64,000 bases of DNA, from the sequence record MW812343.1; one strand, 5' to 3'. Shown here piece after piece: positions 35,405 to 50,256 of the stretch. The notes under the pieces were generated by a model, which was given only the letters and a program-made list of their open reading frames with translations, did not search any database and was not told where the DNA came from. Position numbers and translations under genes: made by a program. Each line of letters begins with the position of its first letter. Position 1 is the stretch's first letter.

Positions 35405-36046
35405 ATGACAGCCATTACCGCGGCCTTTGATGGTCACGATTATGCTGGGAAGTCTACGATGGTGCAAAAGGTTCGCGCCGTTTTAGAAGGTCTGGGTCTG
35501 CGAGTGAAGGTGGTTAACCACCCGTGTGCAGATACAGAAACAGGGCAGTTCGCTCGCCGTCAATTGGTGACGGGTGTGGGTGCTGCTCAGGTTGCGCGGG
35601 CAATGTGTCAGGATTTCGAATACACACTGCAATACGTCGTGCCCCAATACGACGTGGTTTTGCTTGACCGTTGGGCACCCGTGACAATCGCCAACCAAGG
35701 CGATGAAGGCCGACAGGAGGTCTTCCGCTCTGGTGTGTGTAACCAACCCGGTTCACCAGAAATTTATATCTCGATGGAGGTCGGTTTTGAAACCGCCAAA
35801 CTCCGTCGCGCTAAACGACTGGCTGAGAAAGGGCTGGACTGGGATGATGCCGTCAGCGGTAAGATGTTCGAGTCGGAAGAAGCGTGGGATGCGTACTGCG
35901 ACCGTTATCGTTATGCGTTCCAGATTCTGACCGAAGGTGGTGATAAGTTCCAGTGGCTGAAGTTTGACGAACAGTCTGACCCCGTTACAACACCACTCAC
36001 CATCGCGTCGGCTATCGCAGTGGCATACGTGAACAAACTAAAATAA
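35405..36046 (+). CDS. tmk: thymidylate (dNMP) kinase
   Basis: FDGHDYAGKST P-loop, NHP, VLLDRW, IYISM, F...K.R. Confidence 0.85.
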   Translation: MTAITAAFDGHDYAGKSTMVQKVRAVLEGLGLRVKVVNHPCADTETGQFARRQLVTGVGAAQVARAMCQDFEYTLQYVVPQYDVVLLDRWAPVTIANQGDEGRQEVFRSGVCNQPGSPEIYISMEVGFETAKLRRAKRLAEKGLDWDDAVSGKMFESEEAWDAYCDRYRYAFQILTEGGDKFQWLKFDEQSDPVTTPLTIASAIAVAYVNKLK

Positions 36047-48581: not shown

Positions 48582-48758
48582 ATGGATAAAATTTATATCG
48601 TTACAGCAGTTCTCTTCACCGTCGCTTGCTTACTGAGCTGGCGCGTATCTTCTAACATGAAACGTCGTAAGTGCCCACCGGGTGCCATTGCGTTTGGTGT
48701 TCAAGCCTGTGTTTACGGTTTCGTTGCCGTGTTCACCGGTGCGAAGTATTTCTTCTAG
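48582..48758 (+). CDS. 58-aa two-TM protein (not in ORF track)
   Basis: MDKIYIVTAVLFTVACLLSWRVSSNMKRRKCPPGAIAFGVQACVYGFVAVFTGAKYFF; AAGGAG SD; own promoter and terminator. Confidence 0.8.
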   Translation: MDKIYIVTAVLFTVACLLSWRVSSNMKRRKCPPGAIAFGVQACVYGFVAVFTGAKYFF

Positions 48759-48762
48759 CAGT

Positions 48763-48797
48763 AAAAAGGGGCACGAAAGTGTCCTTTTTCTTTTTTC
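48763..48797 (+). terminator. intrinsic terminator
   Basis: AAAAAGGGGCAC-GAAA-GTGTCCTTTTT + T run. Confidence 0.85.
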
Positions 48798-48816
48798 GTA
48801 AAATAAGGAGTATCAA

Positions 48817-49884
48817 ATGGCACGTCTGTTAGCATTTACTGGCGGGTTGGATTCTACGTGGGTGTTGAATAAGTTAATCAGCCAACCTGCGTCAGATGGT
48901 GGTGAGGTTATCCATCCTGTTTACATGGATTTTTATCAAGGTTCTCCAGCGGCGTTGGTCGAATTTATTCTCGGTAGTGAAATCGCCCTACGTCTGCTCA
49001 AACACAACAAAGACCACTACAGAGAACCCCTGCTGTGGTTGTCACCACCACATGGTCTGTTTACCTCGGCCATTATCGGGCGTTCGGGTGCTGGCGAGTC
49101 GCGTCTCATCCAGCAGGGAAACACGGTCTTAGGGTTGGCGCACATGATGAACCCGATTCAGGCTCGTCACCCCGGCTCAACGGCATTGACTGGTTGGAAC
49201 AAGGCAGACTTCATTGAAAACAGCGCCTTACAAGGCGAGTGGTCGGAAGAAGATTATCTGCGCCTGAAGAAAGTCTATAGTGAGTTGATGTTCTTCCAAG
49301 ACCATCACTACCGTTGCTCTCCGTTACTCACACCTGCGTGGGATATGGAGAAGAAGGACATGTGGGATCAGCTTCCCGCTGATGTGCAGGAATTGATTAC
49401 GGTCTGCTCGACGTATATGTTCAAGTTCTTCCACATCAAATCTGAAAATGCGATTTATATCGCGTGCAACCCGGAACACTTCGGTAAATCGCTGCGTTAT
49501 CTCAAACGGGGTATTAACTTGTCTGCTGGTTGGCGGATTGCAATTGATGAAGAGTTCAAACGTCGTGTCTTCACAGAAAACTTACCCGGTAACTATTTCG
49601 CCGGGTCTTTCCCGGACGGTATACTGCCTACCGGCGACGAGAAGAAGAATCTCCCCAGCTTGCGAATGACCTCAGACGCAGCCAATCTGCAAATTGAAGC
49701 TTACAGCGTCGAGGAGTGGAAGGTTAAGTTGGAACACGTAGAACAGATGCTAAAGGTGGAACGTGAACGAGAACAAGCCGAGTACCGCGCCCAGCGAGAA
49801 AAAGAAAAGGCTGATAATCCGGACGCTGCAAATAGCGAAGTGGCGAAAGGCGAAGTCGCCGTATCCGGCAGTACCGCTGGTTGA
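48817..49884 (+). CDS. QueC-like PP-loop ATPase
   Basis: AFTGGLDST, IHPVYMDFYQ, TGWNKADF, LTPAWDMEK..MW, ITVCS match QueC order; Zn cluster incomplete. Confidence 0.7.
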   Translation: MARLLAFTGGLDSTWVLNKLISQPASDGGEVIHPVYMDFYQGSPAALVEFILGSEIALRLLKHNKDHYREPLLWLSPPHGLFTSAIIGRSGAGESRLIQQGNTVLGLAHMMNPIQARHPGSTALTGWNKADFIENSALQGEWSEEDYLRLKKVYSELMFFQDHHYRCSPLLTPAWDMEKKDMWDQLPADVQELITVCSTYMFKFFHIKSENAIYIACNPEHFGKSLRYLKRGINLSAGWRIAIDEEFKRRVFTENLPGNYFAGSFPDGILPTGDEKKNLPSLRMTSDAANLQIEAYSVEEWKVKLEHVEQMLKVEREREQAEYRAQREKEKADNPDAANSEVAKGEVAVSGSTAG

Positions 49885-50188
49885 TGTTACTGTTAAATCA
49901 GGTATCAAGGCGTTAGCGCCAACATGGGACTTTTTGATGGAGTACAAAAACTCCGATAAAGGTCCCGAGGCAGAAGACGCTTATACCAAAAAATATAAAA
50001 GCAGAATCCAACAACTCAAACAGGATGACCCTGATGTGATGTTGGAGCTGCTGTATCAGGAAGAGATTATCCTGATGTGCTATTGCCCAGCCGGGAAGTT
50101 TTGTCACCGGCTTTTATTAGTTGATGAGTTCTTCGCATTGGGTGAAGACCACGGTATCGAAGTAATCTACGAAGGAGAAATAGCGTGA
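49763..50188 (+). CDS. DUF488-like protein
   Basis: D.TVKSG, LAPTWD, ILMCYC...FCHR; start uncertain, inside the previous gene. Confidence 0.7.
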   Translation: MNENKPSTAPSEKKKRLIIRTLQIAKWRKAKSPYPAVPLVDVTVKSGIKALAPTWDFLMEYKNSDKGPEAEDAYTKKYKSRIQQLKQDDPDVMLELLYQEEIILMCYCPAGKFCHRLLLVDEFFALGEDHGIEVIYEGEIA

Positions 50189-50256
50189 AGAAAATTCAGA
50201 ACAGTGGAATCTGTGGAACCATCAACCGTAACCAAATTATCAACGAGGATAATAAC

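Follow-up and report, generated by a model that had tools for sequence, protein, structure and literature searches.

Within a 64,000-nucleotide stretch of sequence record MW812343.1 (hereafter the window), which is 100% identical to Erwinia phage pEa_SNUABM_6 (240,164 bp), we analyzed the gene pEaSNUABM6_00140, whose product, like its homologues, is named 'hypothetical protein' in all records opened. The phage belongs to Machinavirus, a genus placed in Chimalliviridae (NCBI taxonomy). On balance, we favor the reading that the protein is an active PP-loop ATP pyrophosphatase of the QueC lineage, predicted from its sequence and modeled fold to adenylate a substrate other than 7-carboxy-7-deazaguanine (CDG). 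Taken separately, the protein is very probably a real PP-loop adenylating enzyme and, almost as probably, not a synthase of 7-cyano-7-deazaguanine (preQ0).

Motifs were paired with those of E. coli QueC in a global profile alignment, and columns were counted over 42 family members sharing 15-30% identity; the positions of the motifs are collected in the table below. An initial annotation of the window had reported that the order of the QueC motifs is retained, and TGGLDS, MDFYQ, TGWNKADF and TPAWDMEKK are indeed all present in that order and pair with motifs of QueC. The N-terminal strand and phosphate loop read L-L-A-F-T-G-G-L-D-S-T (residues 4-14), with FSGGQDST of QueC aligned to FTGGLDST and either Ser or Thr at position 8 in the family. 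The counterpart of the QueC YxQxHxxE motif is F39-Y-Q41...E49, which carries a two-residue insertion (DYGQ..E in QueC aligned to DFYQ..E49); here Glu49 alone is near-invariant, Gln41 is found in 20/42 members and there is no His. Further along, TGWNKADF occupies residues 125-132, where GVCETDFSGYPDC pairs with GWNKADFIENSAL, the Asp being kept and YPDC lost. TPAWDMEKK occupies residues 172-180, where TPLMWIDKAETW pairs with TPAWDMEKKDMW; Pro173 and Lys179 are invariant and Trp175 is present in 36/42. The residues found in all 42 members are G10, S13, Q99, G126, P173, K179 and K224.

The initial annotation had also noted that the RN, YPDC and CxxCxxC elements of QueC are altered, and the alignment bears this out: the Arg of RN, the whole of YPDC and all four zinc cysteines are lost. 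VPGRN of QueC pairs with IQQGN, in which the Asn is kept and Gly stands where QueC has its Arg, a position that varies across the family; of the residues at this site, Gln99 is invariant, Gln100 is present in 37/42 and Asn102 in 26/42. The YPDC position is taken by N-S-A-L, right after I-E134, and the motif preceding it holds the invariant Gly126 together with Trp127 (40/42), Asp131 (41/42) and Glu134 (34/42). The C(x)8CxxCxxC zinc ribbon is missing and its region is a cysteine-free hairpin; the helix that follows the ribbon in QueC is retained, with the invariant Lys224 as well as Tyr228 and Gly232. The window protein has three cysteines, none of them conserved, and no cysteine is conserved across the family. 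The crystal structure of Cap9-CdnD shows the deazaguanine gripped by Y115 and D117 (YxDC motif) and by R86 (RN), with the Arg stacked on it (10.1101/2025.04.06.647259), and the E. coli QueC mutants Y35A, R99A, Y131A and Y189A are dead (PMC13329287). The window-protein residues aligned to Cap9 Y115, D117 and R86 are not Tyr, Asp and Arg; the counterparts of QueC R99, Y131 and zinc-ribbon Y189 are absent, and that of Y35 is Phe39. Judged residue by residue, the ATP half of the putative QueC-type site is preserved and the substrate half replaced. The new invariant polar and aromatic residues would line the equivalent of the pocket, a pattern that points to a retargeted rather than a decayed enzyme.

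The label 'QueC-like' given by the initial annotation was upheld by profile and fold comparison, although no family model recognizes the window protein itself: it has no match in Pfam (even at E <= 10), NCBIfam or PADLOC, lies below the gathering threshold of PF06508, and gave only noise when searched as a single sequence against the PDB. Against the PHROGs it matches PHROG 8825 (unknown function) at E 9e-144 and a QueC-like PHROG at E 0.86. A 35-member family profile matched the solved Cap9 structure at E 2.7e-5, followed by the nitrile synthetase ArtA, TilS, LarE and QueC; the Pfam QueC model matches 14/35 family members weakly (best 2e-4), and hhalign against E. coli QueC returned 90% probability across the N-terminal 54 columns. 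At the level of profiles, the likeness of the window protein to QueC and Cap9 is far above chance. An AlphaFold model built from 42 sequences (predicted local distance difference test score 89.2, predicted template modeling score 0.88) has a Rossmann-like alpha/beta core that superposes on solved PP-loop members. The initial annotation had allowed for a fold closer to another PP-loop family; instead, a Foldseek comparison with the PDB ranks Cap9 and Erwinia amylovora YcfA top, with a match spanning model residues 1-234, though the score of ThiI is statistically tied with that of QueC. These comparisons support a placement among the QueC lineage, with Cap9, QueC, QatC and YcfA as nearest relatives.

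The gene is no isolated curiosity. PHROG 8825 is a small, conserved family found in jumbo phages only: a word search gave 6 clusters of homologues, a full profile search through 1.84 billion proteins gave 33 representatives (E <= 1e-3), and tblastn 72 phage records with a homologue, all of them genomes of 197-294 kb from phages of Erwinia, Salmonella, Pseudomonas, Klebsiella, Aeromonas, Proteus and Escherichia. The zinc-less clade to which the window protein belongs is confined to SPN3US/Machina/EL-type jumbo phages (Chimalliviridae), and the family profile found no homologue in phiKZ. Compared with Huxley and pEa_SNUABM_43 (80% amino acid identity), the gene has a ratio of nonsynonymous to synonymous substitution rates (dN/dS) of ~0.07, with synonymous sites near saturation, which argues that it is a functional coding gene. 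The C-terminal extension of 115 residues is lineage-specific and shows no conservation across the family. A literature search found no paper on the PHROG 8825 family, SPN3US gp119 or DUF488-N3, and the sequencing runs found were metagenomes and unrelated RNA runs, with no infection transcriptome among them. Two food-fermentation metagenome runs from one study contain 80% of the sampled words of window positions 48600-50200, which suggests that close relatives of pEa_SNUABM_6 also occur outside orchards and stream water.

The genome around the gene offers no deazaguanine pathway. Absence of folE, queD and dpdA had been claimed for the window, and it holds for the whole 240-kb genome, as does absence of tgt and a canonical queC: searches with PF06508 (QueC), PF01702 (TGT/DpdA), PF01227 (FolE) and PF01242 (QueD) gave no match there, and control genomes were positive. 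The genome's only radical-SAM genes are two open reading frames (ORFs) of 303 and 455 amino acids lying 26 kb off, which were not compared with QueE models. TGT is absent as well from SPN3US, an EL-like phage, Noxifer and RSF1. Neither CmoA, an AsnB-like ligase nor NAPRTase was found in the pEa_SNUABM_6 genome; a carboxymethylcytosine pathway was rejected for this phage because the first two are missing, and a link to NAD salvage because it has neither NAPRTase nor NadV. No link to Qat or to type IV CBASS (cyclic-oligonucleotide-based antiphage signaling system) was found, the window protein having no PADLOC hit. Standard preQ0 synthesis, which the initial annotation had likewise discounted, is very unlikely because the deazaguanine-binding residues and the zinc ribbon are gone and no pathway is present in the genome.

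From the chemistry of the family we propose the following course of reaction. The ATP-side elements that are kept ([S/T]GGx[D/E]S, Glu49, Asn102, Asp131 and P-x5-Lys179, on a QueC-type Rossmann core) would bind ATP-Mg, and AMP would be moved onto an oxygen of the substrate (a carboxylate or lactam carbonyl) with release of pyrophosphate, after which a nucleophile would displace the AMP. This nucleophile is probably an amine (ammonia or an amino group, giving an amide or amidine) rather than sulfur, since without a conserved cysteine neither a persulfide nor an Fe-S cluster can be held. In place of the zinc ribbon and of the three residues that hold 7-deazaguanine in Cap9 and QueC (Arg in RN; Tyr and Asp in YPDC), the clade has a set of its own, Gln99, Gln100, Trp127, Glu134, Trp175 and Lys224, and the substrate would therefore not be CDG nor the product preQ0. 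Family proteins are acidic to neutral (isoelectric point 5-7), and no RNA-binding domain was detected. The make-up of the new invariants (Trp and Gln twice each, Glu and Lys once each), the acidity of the proteins with their lack of an RNA-binding module, and the nucleotide-metabolism genes that recur as neighbors hint at a small aromatic, nucleobase- or nucleotide-like molecule as substrate, a guess that we hold tentatively and at less than even odds. The initial annotation had proposed a new adenylating activity; the invariant ATP-side residues and purifying selection agree with it.

Two kinds of neighbor bear on this guess. Downstream, the gene overlaps a DUF488-N3a gene, whose ORF matches Pfam PF22751 (E 1.2e-11) and, from residue 12 onward, PHROG 2450. 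Its frame opens at 49754, and AGGTGG precedes the GTG at 49763. Over the last 40 codons of the PP-loop gene, synonymous divergence is 0.11-0.18, against 0.7-0.8 elsewhere (4- to 7-fold suppressed), which in sequence terms is the signature expected of dual coding. MW812343 annotates the DUF488-N3a gene from 49937 only (83 amino acids), and the conserved protein starts ~58 codons earlier; the early open frame, the PHROG match and the suppressed synonymous change together indicate that the public start is too short. A frameshift fusion of the two genes was rejected, because the +1 frame opens just 9 nt before the GTG, which has its own AGGTGG. In the pEa_SNUABM_6 lineage the two genes are probably co-transcribed and coupled. 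The order PP-loop then DUF488 recurs in Machinavirus, SPN3US-like phages, Asesino, phiEaH2, Caitlin and ChrisDB, and also in a metagenomic phage (L029) whose PP-loop protein is 33% identical to that of the window. Because L029 keeps the longer order of the window too (tmk, GNAT, dam, ..., PP-loop, DUF488), its adjacency of the two genes is an inherited and not an independent one. The two genes are ~3 kb apart in Wellington, Kwan and pEa_SNUABM_11. A coding sequence named 'putative GIY-YIG catalytic domain protein' runs over the DUF488 homologue of the Erwinia phages Wellington and Kwan (records 115766-116134 and 116943-117311), and it may join a nuclease domain to DUF488. We take DUF488 to belong to the rhodanese-phosphatase superfamily, where a 2023 study reportedly placed it; activities on sugar phosphates, nucleotides and nucleic-acid ends are predicted for that superfamily, and these would agree with the substrate guess as a lead.

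The second kind of neighbor is a thymidylate-kinase gene, immediately 3′ of the homologue in the EL-like phage phiRU (L014, record 209999-211820) and in a metagenomic phage (L031:6001-7959); the PP-loop proteins of these two are 29% identical and their thymidylate kinases 34%. In two further phages thyA lies 2-3 kb downstream of the homologue. The word 'orphan' in the initial annotation is right as far as deazaguanine genes go; however, the gene overlaps DUF488-N3a here and abuts thymidylate kinase in two other lineages. Upstream of the GNAT/Dam block, window positions 35426-35821 (record 97426-97821) give a weak thymidylate-kinase-like match (E 1.6e-9) that covers model positions 1-139 of 185 and lies in a 259-amino-acid ORF. 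A 235-kb food-metagenome phage contig carries a thymidylate synthase gene split by an intein with a LAGLIDADG endonuclease (L008:8442-10909), followed by a second short thyA fragment. On another metagenomic phage contig, a Tad2-like gene (PF11195, the anti-Thoeris sponge family) stands directly 5′ of the PP-loop member (L030:2182-2463).

A number of points weigh against the favored reading and the substrate guess attached to it. DUF488 and the PP-loop gene occur independently, phiKZ having only the former and an EL-like phage only the latter. An all-against-all BLAST of 10 diverse loci found no neighbor common to the whole family, and the neighborhoods behind the substrate guess are lineage-specific and partly inherited by synteny. 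In pEa_SNUABM_6 itself, the thymidylate-kinase gene lies 13 kb and thyA 84 kb from the PP-loop gene. Position 12 of the P-loop is Glu in 15/42 members, which is unusual among PP-loop enzymes. By fold score, the tRNA enzyme ThiI and the protein ligases Cap9 and QatC do as well as QueC, and the fold alone gives no support for a small-molecule substrate; the C-terminal extension might serve to dock a macromolecule. Finally, family members go by the name of hypothetical proteins in all records opened. An obligate partnership with DUF488 was rejected, given phiKZ and the EL-like phage and the fact that the downstream genes at five distant loci are not DUF488.

One specific elaboration, which we consider unlikely, is that the PP-loop enzyme carries out the committed step of an undescribed phage nucleotide-conversion route. 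It would adenylate and then aminate a carbonyl, either on a (deoxy)nucleoside monophosphate or on a free base, to make a non-canonical nucleotide, and the product would be handled by DUF488-N3a in the Machina/SPN3US lineage or by the thymidylate-kinase-like neighbor in the EL lineage. If this were so, the phage might alter its DNA or nucleotide pool, or escape a host defense that senses nucleotides. Distinctly unlikely is a protein ligase of the Cap9/QatC type, which would activate a carboxylated small molecule and attach it to a protein of the phage or host at its N-terminal amine, perhaps as a way of disarming or imitating a defense pathway. The equal fold scores of Cap9 and QatC do not separate it from the favored reading, but the Cap9 contacts to deazaguanine are missing, no CD-NTase, TGT/Cap10 or QatA/B/D-like neighbor was seen, PADLOC gave no match for the window protein, and no partner gene is conserved family-wide. 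Equally hard to credit is a modifier of tRNA or other RNA bases like ThiI, TilS or MnmA, which would adenylate a base carbonyl and replace it. Here the tied fold score of ThiI is set against the lack of any detected THUMP, TilS-C or other RNA-binding domain, the isoelectric points of the family, the lack of a conserved cysteine for sulfur transfer, and the absence of tRNA genes from the 64-kb window and of tRNA-related neighbors at any locus.

It is more doubtful still that the protein tailors a modified base in phage DNA, for example by post-replicative amidation of a carboxylated base. In the DNA-modification kits of other phages, PP-loop enzymes of the QueC and AsnB types carry out chemistry of this kind, and Dam methylase and GNAT genes lie ~9 kb upstream, in the same order in L029; however, the genome lacks TGT/DpdA, CmoA and an AsnB-like ligase, the distant thyA is its sole thymidylate-synthase-fold match, and the gene has no conserved neighbor that would install a base. 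To our knowledge, and short of an exhaustive search, modified DNA has not been reported for these phages. A non-catalytic binder of ATP or nucleotides (a sponge, decoy or structural protein) that keeps only the fold is very improbable. The QueC substrate-side motifs are gone, Asp12 has become Glu in a third of members and the tail is acidic and disordered, yet the phosphate- and Mg-side residues Gly10, Ser13, Asp/Glu12, Asp131 and Lys179 are invariant or conservatively kept at such low identity, the new pocket invariants fit a retargeted enzyme, and dN/dS is low; the passive counter-defense decoy suggested by the initial annotation is unlikely for the reason that the catalytic positions are invariant. 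The only rival that is practically excluded is a divergent but functional preQ0 synthase using CDG made by the host: enterobacterial hosts make CDG, the QueC lineage is the closest and the Noxifer and RSF1 relatives carry QueC annotations, but the residues whose mutation kills QueC are absent or changed, Pfam QueC does not match, and with TGT/DpdA absent the phage has no enzyme to use preQ0.

The gene appears to be set off from what precedes it. A hairpin with a T tract stands between a 58-amino-acid membrane-like ORF (48582-48758) and the PP-loop gene, and in a 2.8-kb scan that found 8 terminator-like sites where 3.0 were expected, this hairpin had the longest stem. Its position suggests that the PP-loop gene starts a new transcription unit, and that it and the DUF488-N3a gene may form a unit of their own.

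Table. Features at the pEaSNUABM6_00140 locus, in window coordinates (record coordinates minus 62,000)
Feature	Position	Strand	Remarks
Terminator-like hairpin (48764-48789, 11-bp stem) and T tract	48764..48798	+	just upstream of the PP-loop gene
Shine-Dalgarno sequence AAGGAG	48805..48810	+	6 nt ahead of the ATG of the PP-loop gene; read directly
PP-loop gene pEaSNUABM6_00140 (PHROG 8825)	48817..49884	+	predicted 355-amino-acid QueC-lineage PP-loop ATPase; no internal stop
PP-loop T-G-G-L-D-S, residues 8-13	48838..48855	+	Gly10 and Ser13 invariant in 42; position 12 Asp or Glu
Y-M-D-F-Y-Q...E49	48922..48963	+	counterpart of QueC YxQxHxxE; MDFYQ is residues 37-41
Q99-Q100-G-N102	49111..49122	+	replaces QueC VPxRN
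G126-W127-N-K-A-D131-F-I-E134	49192..49218	+	replaces QueC GVxxxDxSGYPDC
T-P173-A-W175-D-M-E-K179-K-D-M-W	49330..49365	+	P-x5-K motif common to QueC and Cap9
K224-S-L-R-Y228-L-K-R-G232-I	49486..49515	+	aligned to the end of the QueC zinc ribbon, CxxCNLRANGL; no cysteines
C-terminal extension, residues 241-355	49536..49884	+	long helix 298-333; acidic, poorly ordered tail
DUF488-N3a gene, 141 amino acids, GTG 49763	49763..50188	+	+1 frame; 122-nt overlap with the 3′ end of the PP-loop gene

Bacteria have repurposed the QueC scaffold twice for anti-phage defense, in Cap9 and in QatC (papers of 2025-2026), and the PHROG 8825 family would be a third such case, now among phages. Strong selection maintains this zinc-less clade, with its fully rebuilt pocket, in many nucleus-forming jumbo phages without a deazaguanine pathway, and the identity of its substrate could reveal new nucleotide or base chemistry, a protein or RNA modification of jumbo phages, or a counter-defense enzyme. 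Cap9, the QueC-like ligase of type IV CBASS (PDB 9nto_B), is ~185 amino acids long, about half the length of the 355-residue window protein, and keeps RN, YxDC and the CxxCxxC zinc site, whereas the window protein lacks all three. Cap9 also adjoins a CD-NTase and the TGT-like Cap10; the pEa_SNUABM_6 genome has no TGT, PADLOC does not recognize the window protein, and all neighbors are hypothetical phage genes. QueC itself (PF06508; PDB 3bl5, 2pg3) differs from the window protein in its Pfam match, the Arg of RN, YPDC and the zinc cysteines, and in its context of FolE, QueD and TGT, which are missing from this genome. QatC has a variant zinc motif and a motif set of its own (PMC13329287). In QatABCD it needs QatA, QatB and QatD (PDB 9y02_B), and at the window gene there are neither such neighbors nor a PADLOC match. 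The PP-loop sulfurtransferases (ThiI, MnmA, TtuA/NcsA, LarE) are marked by conserved catalytic or Fe-S cysteines, and ThiI by THUMP and rhodanese modules, features that the window protein does not have. YcfA of Erwinia amylovora presumably has a role in the synthesis of 6-thioguanine. Compared by fold and overall identity, it (PDB 9kq6, 9kq7, 9kq9) is 12-16% identical in sequence to the window protein; the phage family extends to phages of Salmonella, Pseudomonas and Klebsiella as well.

A sister clade is formed by Noxifer gp027 (L025, 22298-23278) and RSF1 ORF153 (L026, 142388-143230), which match the family profile of PHROG 8825 (E 2e-11) as well as Pfam QueC above threshold. Like the window protein, they are jumbo-phage proteins (280-330 amino acids) with an acidic tail, lack RN and YPDC, and belong to genomes without TGT; unlike the window clade, they retain the zinc ribbon with its four cysteines and carry none of the QQ, GW and P-x-W signatures. 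BFVD names the Noxifer and RSF1 proteins '7-cyano-7-deazaguanine synthase'; in the RSF1 record, ORF153 is entered as 'QueC-like queuosine biosynthesis'. These labels are probably wrong, as RN and YPDC are missing and there is no TGT/DpdA to use the product. This matters for annotation more broadly, as other phage relatives also carry the synthase label without the residues required and in genomes that have no TGT/DpdA. Together with the window clade, these proteins make it seem that orphan QueC-derived enzymes are recurrent in chimalliviruses.

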